A stretch of 63,984 nucleotides of DNA, the filler included, from Reticulomyxa filosa (lineage: Eukaryota > Protista > Foraminifera): NCBI GenBank assembly GCA_000512085.1. It is 20 parts of 20 records of this genome, joined end to end, with 100 filler letters (N's around TTAATTAATTAA, not from the genome) between each part and the next. Parts side by side here need not be neighbours in the genome. Positions count along the whole stretch, not along the records: positions 13,252 to 23,551 come from ASPP01028645.1; 19 more parts are not named here. The stretch is one strand, 5' to 3'. The translations under genes were made by a program, and so were the position numbers. Positions 9,048-23,551 of this stretch are shown in pieces. Numbering within the stretch: the stretch's first letter is position 1; each line of letters opens with the position of its first letter. The notes under the pieces were generated by a model, which saw only the letters and a list, made by a program, of their open reading frames with translations, was not told where the DNA came from and searched no databases.

Positions 9048-9623
9048 GTTGCTACAGATGACAGGTTATCGTCAATGCAAGCAATAATCTTAAATGCAGT
9101 CTCTTCGGTATGGATACCTTTAACTTACTTTCTCAGCAATCATCGACAGTATGCCTCCGTGCTGACGCTCTGGCAATTCTTTCTCCCGAAAAAGGACCTT
9201 CGCGTGACCAATTCGATATTGGAACTCGTTCTGCGACGGGACATACACAACAGTGATACGTTTGAGTGCGTGCGCCAAAGCTCCGTTTATCCCTGCGAGT
9301 CCTTTGCGACGGACCCCTGTCCGGCAATGGTCAGTCTCATGGCTTGGAGCTTGGAGAGAATGAACAAACACGTCATTGTGTGTGACAGTTTTGTTGAGGA
9401 GGCGTTGATGCTTCAGTTTTATCTCTTGTTTGACAAGTTTCATCAAGAGGTCTCTGACAATTGCGTCTGTCGCTTTGATCAATTCGATGTTCGCTTTGCT
9501 CAGTATTTCATGCGAAATCTTCAACTGGGCCTGTTGCCACAGTATCCACACTTGTGTCAGTATTTTGTTCAGCTATTCAAATTATATTTCCCTAGTGCCT
9601 CCAAACATTTGACATTATTTTGA
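6379..9623 (+). CDS. Large intron-free hypothetical helical protein with poly-N, poly-Q, (QS)n and (NV)n tracts, 5'-truncated
   Basis: ORFs 6450-7652, 7570-9087 and 8901-9623 join after restoring single C's in the (CAATGY)n tract at about 7590-7620 and at AAACAC(C)CATGG at about 8740. Confidence 0.7.
8977..9047 (+). repeat. (AAT/AAC)n coding microsatellite (poly-Asn)
   Basis: Seen directly; similar tracts at 6379-6410 and 58216-58290. Confidence 0.95.
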
Positions 9624-10249
9624 ATCCTATGTTACTTATACTTTCGAGAGACAACTCCTCGTTTTTTCATGCAATTATTAACACATAAACAATCAAACCA
9701 AATTTTATATTTTTTTTATTTTTTTTTTTTTATGTGTTTTATGTTGCGACATCTTGTATTTCCAGTCGACCTAAACGAGGTGTTTTTTTTTCCCCAATAA
9801 ATTTTGTTTTTTTTTAATAATAATGTAGACGAATCTCGACTTTCGCGCTTTTGATCGCTGACATTTTTTTTTTTTTTAAGTTCGTAGTTGGGATTTAAAA
9901 AAGGACATTGTTTCGGCACCCACAATCAATAGGTGCAATTTTAAAAAAAAATCGACTTGGTGCATTAAACAACAGTCATAAAGTTGTGAAAACTTTTTTC
10001 GGTTCTCCAAAACAAGTGGTAACCCCCTTTCGTACGTTCCTGAAAAGAAAGCCAGAGTTTTTCAGAATTGCATTTCATTAATGGCTCTAAATAATAAAAC
10101 AGCCAGGGTTTTTGGAAAACTAACAGGTCCTGGCGACAGTGGATGCAAATATAAAATTCCGAAGAAATTTCGAGGTATAAACGACGGCGCTTTTATACCT
10201 AACGAAAGAAACAGACCATGTGCCACACCGTCCTCCTTTTGCGGCCACA

Positions 10250-10531
10250 ATGAGTCGTCAAGACATAATACGCATTTTTGTGACAACATTGTTGGACGCG
10301 TTGGTGCGATATGAGAACAACCCGAACTTACGTAACTACATATTGTGGACGACAGAGCAGTGTTTGACAGCCCCGCAAGGAGGGGACGGAAGTCACATAG
10401 GAATAATCTATAATCTCGACGTTCTCACGACACTGATTGGCGAGTGGTTGCAAGTGTGCAAATGGCACAACTACGATCACTATGCACTGTTGCTCTTGAT
10501 GTTGCGCATCATTGACATGGCATTCGCACAA
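10250..10531 (+). CDS. First exon of a hypothetical alpha-helical protein
   Basis: MSRQDIIRIFVTTLLDALVRYE...MAFAQ followed by GTAGTT donor and T/A runs. Confidence 0.55.
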
Positions 10532-11908: not shown

Positions 11909-13130
11909 ATGGCAGAAGATCCAGGAAAAATAGAAATAAAAAAGTTTTTACAAGTCCTGAGACCAAAGTATGTGGACATAGTTTTAGAACAGTTGTTCAA
12001 CGTTTTAGAATGTGACGACATGGAAAGCGTAGCTGTCATATCGGCCGAAAAATGGAGGAGCGTATTCAAAGAAGCAGAAGTAGCCGAAGGTCAACAAGCA
12101 AAACTATTAAACGCTTTGAACGAGTGGCGTAAAAACAAAGACATGAAACCATTTGACGTCGAGACCTATATCAAAGGAGAGGCCGCAAAACCACAGTTAA
12201 ATACAAAAAATGTCCAAGATCAAAAAAATAAGAAAGAGCCAGTCGAAGAAAAAAGCAGCTCCATTCAAGGCAATGCCAACAATGAACAAAATGTTACCAT
12301 TGAAAAAAAAGTAGAGTATGGAAAAGTCACAAATGTTAATTCAGTATCAAAAACCATTACCCTTAGCCTGAAGGTAAGACTGACAACACTAAACATTATT
12401 TTTTACTTGTGCAAATATGGAAGAGGGAAGAGAAAAGTGGCATCTTTTTTTTTTTTTTTGATTTGTTGTTAAAATACCTTTACAGAACAATCAAAATGTA
12501 ATGTTACCACTAGAAGAAAAACGATGGGGACATTTGATGCAAGATGACGAAATTCAATACACGTATACGTTGGATCAGAACGCAAACTTGGTGATGGAAA
12601 ATATTGAGTGGCCCGTGTATCAAGAACTGATTGTGTCTACTAATGGAATGCTTTTTGTATTGATGCAACCCCACTCTGAAGCAAAAGAAGTTATCTTATT
12701 TATTTTTTTTTTAAGGTAGTTGATGTTACGTAAACAGTTTTTTTTTTTGTTGCACTGGAATTTTTTTTTTTTTTTATTACGTCTCCATTGGTATATTGGT
12801 GGTGTGAAGACGAGGGTGATATTTCGAAGCGATATTGTGTCAGGAGTAACTAAATTGCGTGAAGGAGACAAATTGTCTTTTCGGCTTCGATTTGAAAAGC
12901 AAAAATGGGTACCTGCAGATGTGAGACGGATACAAAAAGCTGCCATGTTCACATAATACATATACGTATATGTGCACATGATACTTTAATGATTTTTGAT
13001 TACGATACAAACTTCCTTGTTTTGTGTTTGAACAGCTGTCAAATCAGAGATATTCCAGTGTCTTTGGAAATTGAAAAAATAGCAAGCAATTACTGTGATA
13101 TCAGAAAGTGGCTCGAAAATCCATCTCAAG
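11909..13130 (+). CDS. Multi-exon protein with an N-terminal SAM-like helical domain and OB/cold-shock-like domains, 3'-truncated
   Basis: Exon 1 11909-12373, intron GTAAG..TACAG, exon 2 from 12486; RVIFRSDIVSGVTKLREGDKLSFRL..ADVRR resembles a cold-shock domain. Confidence 0.55.
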
Positions 13131-13251
13131 GTATAAAGTTTTTTTTTTTTTNNNNNNNNNNNNNNNNNNNNNNNNNNNNNNNNNNNNNNNNNNNNTTAAT
13201 TAATTAANNNNNNNNNNNNNNNNNNNNNNNNNNNNNNNNNNNNNNNNNNNN

Positions 13252-13904
13252 TTATTCACAGTACAATGTTGTAACCATTGTTTTAAATCAGGTTTCTTAT
13301 TTAATTCATTTGCAATTTCATCAAATCCATCTAATACTAATAATCCATTTTGTGAATATACAATATTTGTATCATCTATATTCCATTGAGGAATATGTAA
13401 TTCATTTATTATTTTTGACCATTGCATTTTAATTATATCATTATTTTTATTCCTAGTTTTATCAAAAATATTGAAAATTTTTCTCAAAGGAATATGTAAT
13501 AACCATTCAAATCGATCATTCCACATTTGATTTGTTGCCCATAAATATGTAATCCTTTGAGTTAATACACTTTTTCCACTTCCAGCTTCTCCATAAATAC
13601 TAATGTGATGCGTTTCCAATCCATTTTCTTCTATTTTCCAAATATCTTGCAATTCTCTTATTTTTTGATCATCATCATTTATTAATGAATAATTCAGTTT
13701 ATTTGGCCATTTTTCATCATCTTCTTTTTTTTCGTTATCACTCCATTTATTTGGGATATTCACTTTTTCTTCTTGAAATTGTTGGCTCACAAAGGCTAAT
13801 CGAACGTAGCAAGTATCAACAGACTGCTGAGGGTCGTCAAATAATGGAACTAATTTGTCTTGAGTTTTGTAATAGTCTTTTAATTTTTGTTTTGTAACTT
13901 CCAT
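13252..13904 (-). CDS. NACHT (STAND) NTPase, 3'-truncated; may have an additional upstream exon
   Basis: Walker A GEAGSGKS, Walker B LLVLDGFDE, YLWA..W..RFEWLLHIPLRKI; an A-run+CAG acceptor sits in frame at about 13941. Confidence 0.9.
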
Positions 13905-14278
13905 TGTTTCATTAATTAATTTTTTCTCAGATGACGGGGAACTGTTTTTTTTTTGGAGTTGTTTTTAAACGGTCAGAAGCCTTAGGTAAGTTCTGATCGA
14001 TGAGCAATGAAAACAAGAATTTGATCTAATTCATTAACTTTTTACAACACCAAGGAAAAATTTATTTGAAATGAAGTGTTTGGCAGTGAAAAACAATAAA
14101 TCCTAGAATATGTAAAATGTGCATTAAATATTATTGATTAGCACAAAAATAAATAAGCAAAGTCTAAATTGCTGAATTTTCATTGCCACAAAGCAAGCAA
14201 AACATTATATTCAAAAAGTACTTTTTTTCTTCAATTGTTTACATTGTTTAAAATACACACACAAATATCGTTGCTATT

Positions 14279-16550
14279 TTATAACAATCCCCATAGTCGA
14301 ATTGTACCAACTTTAGAAGCTGATACAATTATATTACCATTTAATGAAACATCTAATCCTGTTATTTCACTAAAATGTCCTTCCAATTTCTGTATTTCCA
14401 TTCCTAAGTATACATCCCACAATCGAATTGTCATATCATTTGAACATGATACAATAGTTTGATTATCGGAAAATAATCGCAAATCTGTTATCAAATCAAA
14501 ATGGCCACCTAATTGTCTTACTTGTATTCCTGACATAGCTTCCCACATTCGAATTGTCCTATCACTTGAACATGATACAATACATGAATCATCTGTAGAA
14601 AATCCTACTTTGAGCACATCACCTGAATGTCCTTTGAGTTTTCTAATTCTTTTGCCTGACATTATATCCCAAATTGCAATTGTTTTATCATTTGATGCTG
14701 ATACTATTTGTTGGCCATCGTGTGAAATTTCGACATCATTGACATGATCTGAATGTCCTCTTAAATGTTGCATCTCTTGTCCAGATCTCGCATCCCATAT
14801 TCTTATTGTTTGATCATTTGATCCTGATACAATAATATTTCCATTTGGCGAAAATTGAGCACTGTTTACCACATTTGTATGTCCTTCGAATTTTATTATT
14901 TCTGTGCCTAATTTTAGATCCCATAACCGAATAGTCTTATCTTTGGAACACGATAAAATGAAATTTCCATCCCATGAAAATTTTGCATTAGTGACAGATT
15001 CTAAATGACCTTTCAGTAGGTGTATTTCTCTTCTCGTCTCAACGTCTAATACTCGAATGTTGCTATCATCTAAAGTTGTAACAATCTTTGTACTGTCAGG
15101 TGAAAATTTTACGTTATTTACATTATCTGAATATCCTTGGATCACTTTTATTGGTTTGAAATATTTCATCTTTTTTTTTTTTTTTTAATAGATATTAATA
15201 TTTAATATTCAAAAACAACCAACAAATGAATATGGATATACCAGGACATAGTGTAAGATGATAATATTAAAATCATCAATCCATCCTATCTTGCCAGACA
15301 GTGAATGCATCCAATGTTCAATTATCATTTCAATTTCTTTAGTTTTCTTTTTTTTATATCAATACTTTTTAACAAAAAAAAAAAATTAAATATCGACAAT
15401 TAACTTTTAATTTCTTGATATCTAAATCATATTGCATCTCTCCTAATTCACTTTTAATCTGCTTAATATCATTTATTTCTTCCTCCTTCTTTCTTTTTTC
15501 GTATTCCTCTTTCTCTATTTTTTCTTCTTCTTCAATCGTCTCTTGCTCTTCCATGTTTGTCCCTTTGCTTTTTATCCACTCTTCAATTCTAGTTTTCATA
15601 TGTGTTGCTAATACACGACCTTCACTTGTCCCTCCTATAATATGTACATACTTATTGTCTTCACTCAATATTGTATTACAATCGGCTAATTCAATTGGTA
15701 GAGTATACTCAAGTTTTATCCATTTATTCTCTGTTACTGAATATTTATGTATTTCATTTGAACCGCCATGCTCAAAGTCTCGACGTCCACCAAAAAAAAA
15801 AATAAAATCGTCAATGTGAATAAATCCATATGAAAATGAATCTTTAATACTTGTGCAAACTCTCATTTTCTGAAATTTAAATGTACTATTTGTTTCATCG
15901 TAATTTATTAATAACCCTGTCTTTTTGTAAAATAATATCTGTTCATTTTTTGATTTTGCTACAAAACAATGATGACTTATTGAATCACTATCATTCATTG
16001 GCAAGGTATTAAAATTTATATATTGAAACGTATCTAAATTATACACATCAATATCTTTTGGGTAATATGTAATAAACAATAAATTATTATTACTTCCACC
16101 AATCACAGCACGCGCTCCAAGATAACTGCCTTTACTGCTTCTAATGTACACTCGTTCATTTTTATTATCAAAGATAGGCATCCATTCATTTTTCTCTGTT
16201 TCATTATTTTCATTGTACCAAACACTTTTATATTTCATCTTTAATGTATGGTCACGTGATCCAAAAGATAACAAAGTAATATCATTTGCATTGCTGTCAA
16301 TAAGCTTCACTACACAATGTCCACGTAATTCAATATCGACTGGATAAGAACAGATGTATTTATATTCATTTTTAAGCATATGATATGAATAGCAATCTCT
16401 TTCAAAAAGACCTCCACAGATGAGAATTTCATGTTTGTACACTTTACATTGACTACATCGAAGCGAAATTGGTAAAGAGGCCAAAGATTCAAATCGAGTT
16501 GTCATGTCTATGTTTGTGCTTTCTTTTGCTGTCATGTCAGTTGTAGCCAT
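14279..16550 (-). CDS. Kelch propeller - charged coiled coil - linker domain - 7x WD40 protein (3 exons, 713 aa)
   Basis: Exons 16550-15405, 15346-15242 and 15169-14279 join in phase 0 through GT..AG introns; Kelch GG motifs; GH..WD repeats. Confidence 0.85.
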
Positions 16551-16824
16551 TTAAAAAAGATATACTAATATATATTGTGATTAATTGCTAGACTATTTTC
16601 AGAGTTTTTTTGAAAAAAGTGACCAAAAAAAAAGGAGAGAAGATCTGATGAATTATGGAGGAAGTTGTTTTTGTTCTAGTCCAGTATTTTGTATAATCAT
16701 GAAAATAATATATCACACGCCAATAATTGAGTCTAGGTTTTGTTAGCAGTACAACGTGGATAATAAAAGTTCTTTCAAAAAAGTTCAAATACTTGTTAAT
16801 ATTTGTTCCACATTTTCCTGTAAT

Positions 16825-19800
16825 ATGTCAACTACAACAACTCCCTTTGAAATTTTGCCCCCTTTACCTCTTCCACTTACTCATTGTCAATGTGTCTCTT
16901 ATAAACAAGAAGTTCTCATTTGTGGAGGCTGGAAAGTGCGAAAATGCTATTCCTATCATACAATTAAAAATCAATATAAATTTATTTGTTCTTATCCAAA
17001 AGATGTCACTTTGATTGGGCATAGTGTGGTAAAACTTGTAAACAATGGCAATGATAGTAATTTAATTACACTACTATCTTTTGGTGGACAAGACGCAAAT
17101 AAAAAGAAATGTACATTAATAATGCGTTATACGAGCGTTTGGGATGATGAAAATACAAAAACTTTGAATAAATGGATTCCTTTCACTGATAATAATAATA
17201 ATCCAATTCATATTGGAAATGATGAAGATAATTACCAAGGCTTACGTGCAATAATTGGTGGAAGCAAAAATCACTTATTGTTTATTACCTATCCTCCAAA
17301 AAATATTGATGTATTTAATTTGAATACATTTCAATGTATCAATCGCAGTACTTTGCCAACAAATGATTACATATGGTATCACTGCTTTGTATCTAAATCA
17401 GAAAATCGATTAAATAAAAAAAACAATGAAATGTTATTATTTTGTAAAGCAACTGGATTATCAATTGAATACAATGAAAAAAACAAGAAATTTAATTTTC
17501 GTAAGTTATCTGTTTGTAATGATATTGCGCCATTTTATCGATACATATATATATGCAGTAATGATTCAATTTGGTTTTTTGGTGGATGGAATGACTGTAT
17601 TGGTATTAAAGCAATTATTTCAAATGTAATATATAGATATTCGATAAATGAAAATAAATGGATAAAAATTGAACAAATTTTGCCCATAGCATTAAGTGAT
17701 TGTACTGGAATATTGAACGAAGATAAAACATATCTACATATTTTAGGCGGAGAAAATGAAAAATCTGATGTAGTATCAATACATATGAAAACAAAAGTAA
17801 AAGGATGGATAAATAAAAAAGAAACAAAATGTAAAGTACAATCTCCATTGGTGTTATTAGCAGAAGCAATACAACGTGAACAATACCAACATCTGAAATG
17901 TGCAAAACAAGATCTGAATTTGTTACAAAATCTACTTGAACAAACATTTGGATATCAAGTGTTTAATACCTATGATCCTCAATATCCAATAACTGAATCA
18001 CGTCCTTTGAATAAATTAAAGAAATTGATTGTGAATTATTCCAATGATAATAATAAAAACGTCCATGATGGATTGATATTTGTGTGGTATGAACATACTG
18101 AATCTAAAAGTAATAAAGGTGCAAACAAATCCAAGATTTTCAAAGACATCCAAGATCTTTTTATAAAATCCGACTACTTTATAAATAAACCAAAAATATT
18201 CCTAAAAATTGCGTACATTAAAAAAGATGGAGCCAATTCCACTAAAAATAAAACGTGGTGTAATTATGATGCAAAGGCGTTTACGATTTTTGTAAACATT
18301 CCACTGAAATCTATGACCAATATTTCAGAAGGAAGCCATTTTACAAAATTGTTTTGTCAAGCCTTTGAAAAGGACACAAAACAAAGTTTGGATGTTATAA
18401 TTAAACAAGTAACAAATACTGTGTTTAGCCAAGAAGTAGGAAAAAAAGACGTGTCAAATACTCTGACTAATCATTCTGATATTTATTTGATTCCAAAATC
18501 ATGTCGTGATAATGATGACAATAAACAAGAAATGCCATTAAGACCTGACAATAGCAATGGTATTATACAAACATTAGATCTTAAGAAACATTGGAACAAA
18601 CATTGGAGAGAAGCAAATTTAGAAGCCGCAAAAAGAGTTGGAGAAATGATTGAAAAAAATGAACAAGGATTGATTGTTGTGGTCACCAATTCTTTTGAAT
18701 GGTCGACCACATCGAGTTTAAATTTAATTAAGTATAACGAAAGTGCCTTTTCATCATTGAAATGGTTAATAAAAAAAAATGATACTGATGATATTGAGAA
18801 AAAGTTATTTGTTATTTATTGGTTATATGTTATTAAAGGCAAATTCATAACATTACAAAATGTAAATATTGATGGAAATGTGTATGCTGTCAATTGTAAA
18901 ATTCAATGCAATGGAAATGTTAACATCACAACACAATTATTTGTAACAAATGATACTATTGTTCATCAACAATTAAAACAACAAATATTACCAATTCAAT
19001 GGAATAAACAATTACATTATGATATTCCATTGCAACTGGAAGATCTTGAGCATAAAGGAGAACAATGCTTAAACAATCGTTTGTATGACGAATCTATTGT
19101 CCATTGGCAAAATTACTTACAAATTTGTATTGATACGTTTGGACTTGATCATCCTTTTGTAGTTTATTCCAACAGTAGGATCGCCGATTGTTATTATGAA
19201 AAAAATGACTTTAATAAAACAATTTATCATTATAAAATAGTATTAAAAATCGCAATAAAATTATTTGGAGCCAATCACAAAAATATCGTCCAGTATCACT
19301 ATAATTTTGCCCATGCTTATTATTGTAAAGGAGATTATTTCAAAGCAGTTGAACATTACAAAAAATCATTGGGAATTATATCAGAGAATATTGAACGTAA
19401 TTGTGACTATGAGAAAGCTGATTTGTGTAAGCGTTTAGGTAATTCATATCATTATGGAGGAAATTATGATAAAGCAATTGAACATTTTGAACAATTTTTA
19501 AAAATTGTACCTGATATTGTTGCAACGAATCAGAATGATGGAGAGGACATGATAGAATTGTATAACAATTTGGGTAACTCTTATCGTTATAAAGGAAATT
19601 ATAATAAAGCAATTGCGTGTTATGAAATGGAATTAAACAATAAATTAAAAAGATATGATGTCAATCATATTGATGTTGCTTGGTCATATAACAATATAGC
19701 TAACTCATATTATAATAAAGGAGAGAATGATAAAGCCATTGAATACTATGAAAAAACGTTGCAAATCAGATTGCAGATCTTTGGAGAAAATCACGCTGAC

Positions 19801-21873
19801 GTTGCTTGTGCATATAATAGTTTAGGTAATTCATATTACAGCAATGACGAATTTGAAAAAGCAATTGAATATTGTGATAGAGCATTAAACATTCGATTGA
19901 ATATATTTGAAGAAAATAATGTCGACGTTGCTTGGTCATACAATGATTTAGGAAATTGTCATTATAGTAAAAAAGATTTCCACAGAGCAATTGAGTGTCA
20001 TGAAAACGCGCTAAAAATACGATTGAATATTTTTGGATTTGATCACGCTGATGTTGGATGGTCATACCACAACGTAGCTAATGCTTATTATCTTATGGGA
20101 GAATTCGACAAAGTGATTGAACAGCAAAAAAAATCATTAGAAATTAGATTAAAAATTTGTGGGGAGAAAGATGCTAATGTTGCTTGGTCATATAATAGCT
20201 TGGGTAATGCGTATTACAATAAAGGTCAATTTGATACAGCCATTGAATTGTATGAAAAACAACTAAAGATTCGATTAGATATATTTGGAATAAATAGCTC
20301 TGATGTCGCTTGGGCATACAACAATTTAGGAAATTCTTATTTTCGAAAAAAGCAATATGATAAATCCGTTGAATATCATGAAAAGGCATTACAAATTAGA
20401 TTAAATCTTTTTGAAGAAGATAATATAGATGTAGCAAATTCCTACAAACATTTAGGAAACTCTTATTGTGAAAAAGGTGAATATGAAAAAGCTGTTGAAC
20501 ATTACGAAAAAGAGTTGAAAATCAAGTATCGTATTTTTGGAGAAAGTCATGCTGACGCTATGTCGTCATGCAACAATTTGGGTGTTGCATATTATAAAAA
20601 TGGAGAATATGACAAAGCAATTGAATGTCATGAAAGACAATTAAAAATCAGATTAGATGCACTTGGAATAAATCATGCAGATGTTGCTTGTACATACAAT
20701 AATTTGGGATGTGCCTATTATGACAAAGGAATATATGATAAAGCTACTGAATGCCACATCAAAGCATTGAATATTAGATTGAGTATATTTGAAAATTGCA
20801 ATCTTGATATTATTGGTTCATACAAAAATTTAGCTAATTCCTATTGTAAGCAACAATGTTATGATAAAGCCATTGAATGTTATGAAAAAGAATTAAAAAG
20901 TAGAATAGCTGTATTTGGAATAAACAATCCTGATATTGCTTGGTCATATCATAATTTAGGCTATACGTATTATCATAAAGATCAGTTCGACGATGCGATT
21001 GAGTGCTATAAAAAATCATTGGATGTTAAATTGCATAATTTTGGAGAAAAGAGTTTAGATGTTATTGATTCATACAACTGTTTGGCAGCTTCTTACTTCT
21101 ACAAAAAATGTTATGGCAAGGCCATTGAATACTATGAAAAGGAATTGAAAGGAAGATTAGATCTTTTTGGAGAAGATAATTCTGATGTTGCTCACGCATA
21201 TTTTAGTTTAGGAGCTACTTTTCATAATAAAAGACAGTATAATAAAGCAATTAAATATCATAACAAAGCATTACACATTCGATTAAAAATATTTGAAGCT
21301 AATCATTGTGATATTGCTGATTCCTATGAAAATTTAGGAACTTCTTATAATTGCAAAAAAAAATTTGATAAATCCATTCAATGTCATGAAAATGCATTAA
21401 AAATTAGACGGAAACTTTTCCAGGCAAATCATCCTGATGCGTCTTGGTCATATAGCAATTTAGGATGTGCGTATTACAATAAAGAAGTTTATGACAAAGC
21501 AGTTGAATATCATACCGAAGCATTAAATATTCGATTACATGCTTTTGGGATAAATAATGCTGATGTCGCTTGCTCGTATTTCAATTTAGCAGAATCTCAC
21601 AGCAAACAAGGACATCTCGATATAGCTATTGAAAATTTTGAAAAGTCATTAGAGATAAGAAAAAAATTATTCACAAAGACCAACAGGCTAGTTGGTCAAT
21701 CTTATTTGAGTTTGGGATTACTACTTGAAGAAAAAGAACAAAATGAAATCGCGATCAAAAATTTAGAAAAAGCATGGGCAATATATAGTACTACAGCAGG
21801 AGAATGGAATCCAGAAGTATTCCGGATCAAAGAAAAAGTGAGAGAATTGAATATGGCTATTTCTACACATTAA
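16825..21873 (+). CDS. Kelch - caspase-like (peptidase C14 fold, catalytic Cys absent) - long 42-aa TPR array protein
   Basis: Uninterrupted ORF; Kelch about 16830-17810; DGLIFVWYEH and KPKIFLKIAY at 18067-18216; about 20 repeats of DVAxSYxNLGxxYxxKGxYDKAIExxEKxLxIRLxxFG. Confidence 0.88.
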   Translation: MSTTTTPFEILPPLPLPLTHCQCVSYKQEVLICGGWKVRKCYSYHTIKNQYKFICSYPKDVTLIGHSVVKLVNNGNDSNLITLLSFGGQDANKKKCTLIMRYTSVWDDENTKTLNKWIPFTDNNNNPIHIGNDEDNYQGLRAIIGGSKNHLLFITYPPKNIDVFNLNTFQCINRSTLPTNDYIWYHCFVSKSENRLNKKNNEMLLFCKATGLSIEYNEKNKKFNFRKLSVCNDIAPFYRYIYICSNDSIWFFGGWNDCIGIKAIISNVIYRYSINENKWIKIEQILPIALSDCTGILNEDKTYLHILGGENEKSDVVSIHMKTKVKGWINKKETKCKVQSPLVLLAEAIQREQYQHLKCAKQDLNLLQNLLEQTFGYQVFNTYDPQYPITESRPLNKLKKLIVNYSNDNNKNVHDGLIFVWYEHTESKSNKGANKSKIFKDIQDLFIKSDYFINKPKIFLKIAYIKKDGANSTKNKTWCNYDAKAFTIFVNIPLKSMTNISEGSHFTKLFCQAFEKDTKQSLDVIIKQVTNTVFSQEVGKKDVSNTLTNHSDIYLIPKSCRDNDDNKQEMPLRPDNSNGIIQTLDLKKHWNKHWREANLEAAKRVGEMIEKNEQGLIVVVTNSFEWSTTSSLNLIKYNESAFSSLKWLIKKNDTDDIEKKLFVIYWLYVIKGKFITLQNVNIDGNVYAVNCKIQCNGNVNITTQLFVTNDTIVHQQLKQQILPIQWNKQLHYDIPLQLEDLEHKGEQCLNNRLYDESIVHWQNYLQICIDTFGLDHPFVVYSNSRIADCYYEKNDFNKTIYHYKIVLKIAIKLFGANHKNIVQYHYNFAHAYYCKGDYFKAVEHYKKSLGIISENIERNCDYEKADLCKRLGNSYHYGGNYDKAIEHFEQFLKIVPDIVATNQNDGEDMIELYNNLGNSYRYKGNYNKAIACYEMELNNKLKRYDVNHIDVAWSYNNIANSYYNKGENDKAIEYYEKTLQIRLQIFGENHADVACAYNSLGNSYYSNDEFEKAIEYCDRALNIRLNIFEENNVDVAWSYNDLGNCHYSKKDFHRAIECHENALKIRLNIFGFDHADVGWSYHNVANAYYLMGEFDKVIEQQKKSLEIRLKICGEKDANVAWSYNSLGNAYYNKGQFDTAIELYEKQLKIRLDIFGINSSDVAWAYNNLGNSYFRKKQYDKSVEYHEKALQIRLNLFEEDNIDVANSYKHLGNSYCEKGEYEKAVEHYEKELKIKYRIFGESHADAMSSCNNLGVAYYKNGEYDKAIECHERQLKIRLDALGINHADVACTYNNLGCAYYDKGIYDKATECHIKALNIRLSIFENCNLDIIGSYKNLANSYCKQQCYDKAIECYEKELKSRIAVFGINNPDIAWSYHNLGYTYYHKDQFDDAIECYKKSLDVKLHNFGEKSLDVIDSYNCLAASYFYKKCYGKAIEYYEKELKGRLDLFGEDNSDVAHAYFSLGATFHNKRQYNKAIKYHNKALHIRLKIFEANHCDIADSYENLGTSYNCKKKFDKSIQCHENALKIRRKLFQANHPDASWSYSNLGCAYYNKEVYDKAVEYHTEALNIRLHAFGINNADVACSYFNLAESHSKQGHLDIAIENFEKSLEIRKKLFTKTNRLVGQSYLSLGLLLEEKEQNEIAIKNLEKAWAIYSTTAGEWNPEVFRIKEKVRELNMAISTH

Positions 21874-22182
21874 AAGAGAGTTTTTTTGCTTGTCACAAAA
21901 TGTTTTACTAGGAATGAAATTGTCAGTTTGTCTTTGTTGAGAAGGAATAAACATAACATAATAATGAAATTTATGCTATTTGAATGTGCAAAACAAACAA
22001 AAATCGGATTTCCATATTTTTTTACAATCCCACAACTACCTAAAAAAACGTATGAACCCTTGCAATTTTATTATTTTTATGATACAACACATAAAAATAT
22101 TTCATTTTTATCGAAAGATAATTTTATTATCTTTATACAGCTTTTAATAAGTGATCAGGTGAATTTTAAATATTTCCATTTA

Positions 22183-23551
22183 CACTAGGTCAAAAGCGTT
22201 TCAATATTGTGTTATTTTTGATAATAATGAAATAAAAGCAAAAGATGAAACTTTTGGCTAATGAAATGTATATTTTTGTGAACTTCAGTTTATCTCTTTT
22301 TTAATTGTCTAATCAGAAACAATATCTTCTTATATTTTTCATTTTTATAATCATTTAAAACTCATTTGAACACCTTTGACCGAAAATACACTAAAAACCA
22401 TTTTCAAAAAAAATTTAAGTGCGACCATATTGTATAGCATTTAGCTTTTCAAACCTTGACACTGTCAACTATGCTACTAATTAATTTTTGACAGAATTCT
22501 GCTGTAATTTTTTCATTTTTCTCGAACAATTTTCCATATGTTTTCAACAGAAGTTGTCAACTTTAAATGATTTTTGATTCGCATATCAAGTTCATTCAAC
22601 AAATTCTACATTGGATTCATATCAGTATATTGTGCAAGCAACTAAAAAATATGAATTTCATTTTCTTTTGTCCATTCTTTAGTTGAATTAGATTTATGTT
22701 TTGGATCGTTGTCATGTTGAAAGATTAAATCAGACTTTGATATGTATAACAATTCAAAGTTTGCATCAATTCGTCGACTAGGATATTTTGGTATAATGAA
22801 AAATTCAAATACCTTCTATTTTGCACAGAAAATCAACTCCTTGCTATGACATACAGCTCCAAACCATGATAGATCCACAACTATGCTTTGTTGTAGGTTG
22901 CACATTTTTGTATTTAAGTGCCTACCTGATTCTTTTACAACAGTACTTACGATTGCGTGTACTAAAAACATTGAATTTAGTATAATCAGACCACAATACT
23001 TTCTTTGTTTTTCAATATACATTTTAATAATTAGCGATTTAGAACCCTTTTACATATTGAAACAGATACTCTGATAAATGTATTGTCTTCTTGCAATAAT
23101 ATCGACTTAATCCAACGCACCAATTTACTTCATTTCTTACATCGACTTTCGGTGGAAGTCCATTTTTTGTTTTTGGAAAATTTTCATTGCATCGAATATA
23201 AAGTCTTTGTTTAATTCGGCTTATGGTGACAATGCTTATATCTACCTCTCGCTTGATTTGTCTATAAGAGAACCATTGCTTTAATAAAAGTTGCACTATC
23301 TTTACACTTTCTATGCTAATTCATTTTATTACAGCAGCAATAAAGATTTTTCAAAAAAAAATTAAACTTTTTTCTTCACAACAACTCACAGAAAATTTAC
23401 ATTAAGAAATTTTTTTTTTCAAAAAGTTTTTAAAAAGTACTCACAACGGTTAAAAGTGTTCAAATAAGTTTTGAATGATTATAAAAATGAAAAAATATAA
23501 GAATGATATTGTTTCTGATTAGACAATTGAAAAAGAGATAAACTGAGGTTC
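22183..23551 (-). mobile_element. Tc1/mariner DNA transposon with decayed transposase
   Basis: Inverted repeats 22280-22382 / 23447-23551; probable left end TA|CACTAGGTCAAAAG; minus-strand HTH (SYRQIKREVDISIVTISRI), GSIMVWSC, FQHDNDPKH, TDMNPM* with stops and frameshifts. Confidence 0.9.

Follow-up and report, generated by a model that had tools for sequence, protein, structure and literature searches.

Three genes on a single contig

We examined a group of three genes of Reticulomyxa filosa that lies within a window of 63,984 nucleotides, the whole stretch of DNA analyzed, which is joined from 20 records of this genome. Positions 13252-23551 of the window are the whole 10,300-bp contig ASPP01028645.1 (assembly GCA_000512085.1), as identified by an exact match of the 1682-aa product of one of the genes; coordinates below count along the window unless another contig is named. 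The G+C content of the DNA is 25-33%, and all named homologs come from Reticulomyxa filosa, a freshwater foraminifer and hence a protist, as an earlier note on this DNA had it. The contig carries three separate, intact genes: a Kelch-WD40 gene (gene A), a Kelch-pseudocaspase-TPR gene (gene B) and the 5' part of a gene for a NACHT nucleoside triphosphatase (NTPase; gene C). The earlier note had interpreted the trio as a split, modular system of non-self recognition that resembles nucleotide-binding leucine-rich repeat receptors (NLRs). We consider it, on balance, probable that these are autonomous genes within a mixed island of gene families, and that the pseudocaspase would have a regulatory role similar to that of c-FLIP. 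The features of the contig that bear on this question are as follows.

13252..13904, minus strand: 5' part of the NACHT gene, 217 codons, cut by the contig end (Pfam NACHT)
14279..15169, minus strand: exon 3 of the Kelch-WD40 gene, with seven WD40 repeats and the stop codon (Pfam WD40)
15242..15346, minus strand: mini-exon of the Kelch-WD40 gene, 35 aa (motif kept in paralogs; borders in frame)
15405..16550, minus strand: exon 1 of the Kelch-WD40 gene, a Kelch head (about aa 17-340) and, behind it, a coiled-coil tail rich in Glu and Lys (Pfam Kelch_6)
16551..16824, no strand: spacer between the diverging genes, 274 bp (read from sequence)
16825..17874, plus strand: Kelch head of the 1682-aa gene, aa 1-350 (similarity to its neighbor; tree)
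17875..18504, plus strand: pseudocaspase domain, aa 351-560 (AlphaFold2 (AF2) model, Foldseek, VIA, profile A3, hhalign)
18547..19005, plus strand: mid2 domain, aa 575-727 (AF2; invariant IDGN.Y motif)
19006..21873, plus strand: TPR array of about 20 kinesin light chain (KLC)-type repeats, each 42 aa long, and the stop codon (Pfam TPR_12 and TPR_10; DNA periodicity)

Gene A starts with an ATG at 16550 on the minus strand (a second ATG is at 16535) and gene B with an ATG at 16825 on the plus strand, which leaves between them the spacer of 274 bp already delimited in the earlier note. A GTG start at 16756 was rejected, as it is a product of the bacterial start-codon list only. The spacer is presumed to be a shared promoter region; no conserved element was identified when its sequence was read.

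Domain composition of the divergent Kelch genes

The N-terminal domains of genes A and B are homologous, with 50% identity over 358 aa (E 8e-108), and their relationship is also visible in the DNA as inverted repeats of 72-75%. Both heads pass the Pfam gathering score of Kelch_6 (25.3 bits), with 28.7 bits for exon 1 of gene A and 27.4 bits for gene B. A profile of 50 Kelch heads retrieved only Kelch propellers from the PDB (best E 5.7e-9), in alignments that span mainly the last two blades. Judged by these profile matches, the N-terminal domains of both genes belong to the Kelch propellers. The homologous heads are followed by repeat arrays of two different kinds, a combination which the earlier note had recognized correctly.

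In gene A the standard code places the stop of the Kelch open reading frame (ORF) at 15369 and the start of the WD40 ORF at 15169, and a short frame between them encodes KTKEIEMIIEHWMHSLSGKIGWIDDFNIIILHYVL, a 35-aa mini-exon that forms a linker. The motif W..L....GWI[DN]DF of this linker occurs at the equivalent place in four paralogous loci (L003, L004, L010 and L011). Because the mini-exon is conserved across paralogs, comparative evidence argues for Kelch and WD40 as parts of one gene. The exons that we infer span 16550-15405, 15346-15242 and 15169-14279, with borders in frame; the introns between them, 15347-15404 (58 nt, GT..AG) and 15170-15241 (72 nt, GTATAT..AG), are in keeping with the mean intron size of R. 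filosa (87 nt), and an annotated 710-aa product that covers the region agrees with the three-exon model. The earlier note had also read Kelch-WD40 as one gene, and this part of its gene model stands; a single intron of 235 nt between Kelch and WD40 was considered and dropped in favor of two short introns around the conserved mini-exon. The last exon holds seven exact 42-aa repeats, which are matched by Pfam WD40 in 7 stretches (1.8e-69) and are on average 43% identical to each other in amino acids and 60% in nucleotides. No NTPase family was matched in gene A by Pfam. Gene A is predicted to encode a double-propeller protein without an NTPase, composed of a Kelch head, a coiled coil, the linker mini-exon and a 7-bladed WD40 domain.

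Gene B is a single exon of 1682 aa, an uninterrupted ORF of 5,046 nt, in which the Kelch domain is followed by a caspase-fold domain, the domain mid2 and about 20 KLC-type TPRs. The TPR array is matched by Pfam TPR_12 (8e-163) and TPR_10 (2e-122), has a DNA periodicity of 126 nt and shows a mean identity between repeats of 41% in amino acids. Mid2 consists of about 150 residues, which form a long helix and a small strand-rich core with the invariant IDGN.Y motif; the core is modeled by AF2 with a predicted local distance difference test (pLDDT) score above 90. A Pfam scan of 41 members of mid2 found no family, save TPR matches in some, and Foldseek and VIA searches of the PDB returned matches only to the adjoining three TPR helices at its end. 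Since TPR helices filled these match lists, the fold of mid2 is left unassigned and is not taken as evidence of a new fold. Mid2 is also found in proteins without the pseudocaspase. Pfam matched no NTPase family in gene B either; its product appears to be an NTPase-less scaffold with a Kelch head, a dead caspase (Cys to Tyr), a small domain and a long TPR solenoid.

A caspase fold without the catalytic cysteine

The Peptidase_C14 match in gene B is marginal (E 0.003, under the Pfam cutoff), and the assignment of a pseudocaspase in the TPR gene, which the earlier note had made, is borne out by structural modeling and by profiles. We modeled residues 351-790 with AF2 from an alignment of 43 paralogs (mean pLDDT 78). 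The top Foldseek match of this model is the protease-like domain of c-FLIP (E 3.9e-4). VIA-align gave animal caspases Z scores of 11.3-12.3, with the pro-caspase-1 of Spodoptera as the top match (Z 12.3, root-mean-square deviation 3.6 over 178 residues), while metacaspases scored 8.4-10.7 and MALT1 scored 9.1-10.0. Profile A3, which covers the caspase domain only and has 40 members, found Dronc (7e-7) and caspase-3 (8e-6) in the PDB; profile A1, which covers the whole central module, found no caspase there. According to the predicted model, the domain has a caspase/hemoglobinase fold.

In the A3 alignment, KPKIFIKI.Y of the family is paired with GKPKLFIIQACRG, where Tyr takes the place of the catalytic Cys; WCGYG is paired with LLSHG. 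The copy in the window has Tyr at the position of the catalytic Cys (KPKIFLKIAYIK, 18187-18222; KIAYIK versus QACRG of caspase-3) and retains His at the His position (WYEHTE, 18070-18102), where the family consensus and most paralogs, unlike this copy, have Tyr. The catalytic His-Cys dyad is therefore incomplete in the window copy, from which Cys is absent, and the replacement of Cys by Tyr implies that the nucleophile is lost. A caspase paralog with both dyad residues (GHG, TCHG) is encoded on another contig, L012, and is related to the pseudocaspase family with an hhalign probability of 97%. Caspase-like proteins of R. filosa have been found to group with animal caspases (Klim et al. 2018, PMC5982838).

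The closest known parallel to this situation is c-FLIP (CFLAR) among the relatives of the animal caspases (C14A). The likeness lies in the caspase fold, with c-FLIP as the top Foldseek match and Z of about 12 for animal caspases, in the loss of the catalytic Cys, and in the presence of an active paralog in the same genome. However, the R. filosa domain lacks a death-effector or CARD prodomain and has instead a Kelch propeller on one side and a TPR solenoid on the other; its Cys is changed to Tyr, and most paralogs have Tyr at the His position too. By analogy with c-FLIP and caspase-8, the pseudocaspase could act as a non-catalytic partner or regulator of active caspase paralogs, with which it may form a heterodimer.

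A more ordinary function has to be weighed for genes A and B, namely that of scaffolds for cytoskeletal transport, which is highly active in this foraminifer, or for substrate recognition of the ubiquitin type, in which case the adjacency of the NACHT gene would be incidental. While the TPRs are indeed closest to kinesin light chain and the Kelch profile matches are substrate-adaptor propellers (KLHDC10, KLHL20, KLHL12 and KEAP1), neither gene A nor gene B carries a BTB, F-box or other ligase-linking domain according to Pfam. Glockner et al. 2014 are said to describe an R. filosa genome marked by gene amplification, for example of kinesins, which we count for the scaffold role. The fusion to a caspase-fold domain, the paralogy with an active caspase and the repeated presence of NACHT genes in the neighborhood all speak against it, and we regard it as improbable.

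The NACHT gene and its relatives

The third gene starts with an ATG at 13904, 374 bp past the WD40 stop and on the same strand, in agreement with the distance of about 375 bp given previously; it is annotated as RFI_32389, partial. It matches Pfam NACHT with 47.2 bits (2.9e-12) against a cutoff of 26.7, and both its Walker A motif (GEAGSGKS, 13569-13592) and its Walker B motif (LLVLDGFDE, 13317-13343) are intact. Only about 100-130 residues lie upstream of the P-loop in the window copy and in the relative on L012, and no separate N-terminal effector domain was recognized in these two proteins. The window copy stops at the contig end, ahead of any repeat arm. In all five longer relatives (L006, L007, L008, L009 and L012), the same strand continues past NACHT into a HEAT/ARM-like repeat region of 830-1677 aa, with an additional weak ankyrin signal in the C-terminal arm. 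In L012 the NACHT domain and the HEAT/ARM arm form one uninterrupted ORF of 1797 aa (13024-18414, minus strand), and the best relatives of this NACHT domain among PDB sequences are NLRP3 (E 1.3e-6) and NOD2. The likeness to these animal NLRs includes the intact Walker A and B motifs of the window copy; in contrast to them, the R. filosa NACHT proteins have no PYD or CARD, and the arm of the relatives is HEAT/ARM-like rather than leucine-rich repeat (LRR).

The fact that all five longer relatives possess a HEAT/ARM arm of their own means that there is no need to invoke WD40 or TPR proteins as sensors for NACHT. Judging by these homologs, the NACHT gene of the window is most likely a self-contained NACHT-HEAT protein of the STAND class (signal transduction ATPases with numerous domains), rather than the half of a split receptor that supplies the NTPase. 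The Walker A motif G....GK[ST] was also absent from 12 Kelch or pseudocaspase paralogs. The proposal of a split modular system is not supported by these data, in that the NTPase is missing from both Kelch genes and the NACHT relatives bring their own arm. PADLOC reported no defense-system match for the NACHT and Kelch parts.

The R. filosa assembly comprises 101.9 Mb with an N50 of 3.6 kb, 39,965 genes, a mean intron of 87 nt and 30% repeats (PMC13746701), and in a draft so repetitive and so fragmented the three genes might be pseudogenes or chimeric assembly products, the more so as a dead transposon lies at the end of the contig. This is extremely improbable given the state of the genes: the 5,046-nt ORF of gene B is uninterrupted, the WD40 and Kelch exons of gene A are intact with a splice structure that is in frame and conserved, and the Walker motifs of gene C are intact.

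Amplification of the families and phylogeny of the Kelch heads

The earlier note had allowed that co-location might be no higher than expected for three highly amplified families, and amplification is indeed what we found. Kelch-head relatives number at least 237 (210-668 aa), plus longer fusions, and the best 120 of them are all from R. filosa, with 40-52% identity. The central module of pseudocaspase and mid2 forms 127 clusters at 50% identity, and for the NACHT fragment at least 39 relatives were found in R. filosa, all of them short or partial. The closest paralogs share about 40-60% protein identity, a divergence at which synonymous sites would be saturated. Nine of ten distant matches of the central module that were checked are from R. 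filosa and one is environmental. As far as homology searches indicate, each of the three families has undergone massive amplification and is nearly restricted to R. filosa.

The environmental match is P0161, a 706-aa relative of the pseudocaspase module (E 1.3e-6) on a 2.2-kb metagenome contig from JGI/IMG; it is the sole non-Reticulomyxa sequence of the ten and may come from another foraminifer.

In a tree of 131 Kelch heads, the head of gene B falls in a clade that also contains P0001 and P0002 (99% local Shimodaira-Hasegawa-like support), two proteins that match gene B over their whole architecture, and the head of gene A falls in a separate clade of 43 members. That the head-to-head pair arose by a recent inverted duplication was ruled out because the two Kelch heads belong to these different clades. 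The C-terminal partners of Kelch heads have been exchanged repeatedly, and the tree shows 13 such changes.

In the annotation, most models of the Kelch family are stand-alone proteins. On L011 (7396-9802), the 430-aa Kelch model P0197 is followed by the linker exon and then by a separately called 304-aa WD40 gene, which argues that some stand-alone Kelch models are probably truncated. Truncated first exons may account for many of the R. filosa models of about 350-430 aa that are named "Kelch motif family protein". In four annotated Kelch-WD40 paralogs, long stretches ahead of the Kelch head (P0005:1-723, P0006:1-323, P0008:1-517 and P0010:1-379) had no Pfam match; these could be new domains or merged gene models.

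Genomic neighborhoods of the families

We mapped 11 further contigs (about 135 kb) by tblastn with the domains of the window itself; the contigs were chosen through members of the families. On the two contigs with the closest paralogs of gene B (L002 and L003), a WD40 gene lies directly upstream in tandem and a NACHT gene is absent. L004 combines a pseudocaspase-TPR gene with a WD40 gene and a Kelch-WD40 gene, two genes of the TPR family are present on L005, a TPR gene is accompanied by two tandem Kelch genes on L010, and on L011 a Kelch-WD40 gene is convergent with another Kelch gene. NACHT genes and their neighbors are in tandem on L001, L006 and L008, divergent on L009 and convergent on L007 and L012. 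The orientation of the pairs is not conserved, being tandem, convergent or divergent without rule among paralogous loci. Family genes make up 13 of the 32 non-focal neighbors in the 11 contigs (window excluded), which indicates mixed islands, and the families adjoin one another at a frequency above that expected from any plausible share of the genome.

Our preferred interpretation is that the trio represents members of lineage-specific amplified families in one of many such islands, where birth-and-death duplication would be the cause of the clustering of genes. The WD40 and TPR arrays would serve as binding surfaces, the NACHT protein would oligomerize upon NTP binding, and the families together may form one broad repertoire for cell death or non-self recognition. 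Several observations weigh against the autonomy of the genes. All six NACHT loci, the window included, directly adjoin a WD40 or Kelch-head gene. The enrichment of family genes among neighbors is strong, with a binomial P <0.001 unless more than about 15% of all genes belong to the families, and P <0.05 for a family share of up to 25%, where the genomic share of WD40 is an assumption. The contigs sampled for this figure are non-independent, in that L002 and L003 resemble duplicated blocks. Finally, on L012 a Kelch-head ORF (9301-10518) is followed after a gap of 62 bp by the caspase with an intact dyad (Peptidase_C14 1.3e-16), and this pair is convergent with the complete NACHT-HEAT ORF (L012:9301-18414); the arrangement could reflect functional coupling beyond the dynamics of duplication alone.

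These observations lead to the alternative of a coupled NLR-like system, in which the Kelch head would be an adaptor between the NACHT-HEAT NTPases on one side and caspase, pseudocaspase-TPR and WD40 proteins on the other, the cluster would be one unit of cell death or allorecognition, and the pseudocaspase-TPR protein would be a decoy or regulator. The families recur side by side, the Kelch head is fused or adjacent to WD40, pseudocaspase-TPR and active caspase, and a Kelch gene adjoins a NACHT-HEAT gene on L001, L009 and L012. In addition, NACHT proteins without an N-terminal effector of their own could need partners, and in an organism that is a fusing syncytium, as R. filosa is generally known to be, non-self recognition is plausible. 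However, order and orientation are not conserved, the NACHT family owns a repeat arm, Kelch propellers are not known as homotypic adaptors, and most of the Kelch-family members examined (L010 and L011) have no NACHT gene nearby. We therefore consider the coupled system possible but doubtful. A more elaborate form of it would be a so far undescribed network, specific to this lineage and like the apoptosome or the inflammasome, in which effector-less NACHT-HEAT NTPases act together with numerous Kelch-headed proteins that bear an active caspase, a c-FLIP-like pseudocaspase with a TPR sensor or a WD40 propeller, the Kelch head provides the coupling, and the islands are its genomic trace. This we regard as unlikely. 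Such a network could have a role in plasmodial fusion (allorecognition) or in defense against pathogens.

What is supported is the existence of co-clustered, co-amplified families that are restricted to R. filosa and carry parts (NACHT, caspase and pseudocaspase, WD40 and TPR of the STAND type) known elsewhere from systems of cell death and non-self recognition. The neighboring families hint at an NLR-like network for cell death or self-recognition, and this particular trio is at most a candidate for a functional unit. The cluster may have an immune function, as the earlier note inferred.

Relation to known systems

The features of fungal NLR-like STAND proteins and of plant paired NLRs are generally known. 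With the fungal proteins (NACHT-WD40 of the HET-E/NWD type and NB-ARC-TPR), the R. filosa locus shares regular 42-aa WD40 repeats and KLC-type TPRs of the TPR_12/TPR_10 kind, a NACHT NTPase close by, large lineage-specific expansions, modular N-termini and a syncytial fusing organism. These repeats are of the kinds attached to STAND NTPases, so that the comparison with the parts list of NLR/STAND immunity, which the earlier note had drawn, is sound. The differences are that the WD40 and TPR arrays of R. filosa are on NTPase-less proteins, that its NACHT family uses HEAT/ARM repeats, and that the N-terminal module is a Kelch propeller, a domain outside the usual set of effectors in fungi.

The comparison with head-to-head pairs of sensor and helper NLRs in plants (RGA4/RGA5, RRS1/RPS4) did not hold. 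Two paralogous genes do diverge from a short common spacer, but neither R. filosa partner has NB-ARC or NACHT and hence neither is an NLR, the arrangement is without rule in paralogous loci, and the heads are from different clades and not sister copies.

To our knowledge, good descriptions of NLR-like immunity and of cell death through caspases exist for animals, plants, fungi and bacteria, whereas there are hardly any for Rhizaria. No mention of NACHT or NLR genes in Reticulomyxa was found in the literature that we searched, and what had been noted previously for R. filosa were caspase-like proteins only (Klim et al. 2018, PMC5982838). The present data describe a foraminifer with an expanded NACHT family bearing an unusual HEAT/ARM arm, with over 100 pseudoenzymes that derive from caspases and are fused to TPR solenoids, and with hundreds of proteins in which Kelch heads recombine with WD40, TPR and caspase modules and whose genes are clustered in the genome. 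If these families cooperate, they would represent an independent invention of STAND-plus-caspase signaling in a syncytial protist and a testable model for the recruitment of pseudocaspases and repeat sensors.

Other elements of the loci

Two additional neighbor families, to which no function is assigned, also recur in the mapped contigs. A 722-aa ORF (L012:2-2167) shares 45-53% identity with three ORFs that lie side by side in L005 (11085-13289) and has no Pfam match; the ESM Atlas gave a weak LRR lead only (score 0.79). The N-terminal part of the TPR gene on L010 (1759-2271) shows 33% identity over 158 aa to L003:7486-8217, a neighbor of the Kelch-pseudocaspase-TPR gene there, and this shared segment is, by its similarity, another shuffled module.

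In the window, positions 22280-23551 hold the remnant of a DNA transposon similar to Tc1/mariner. A Pfam scan of the decayed transposase pieces in this interval gave no match; the transposase reading between the repeats, on the minus strand, contains at least 15 stops, and the motifs VLWSD.TKFN, GSIMVW and DNDPKH were seen in it by eye. The terminal inverted repeats of about 100 nt (22280-22382 and 23447-23551) are 96% and 92% complementary, and the outer one coincides exactly with the contig end, which suggests that the assembly probably broke there.

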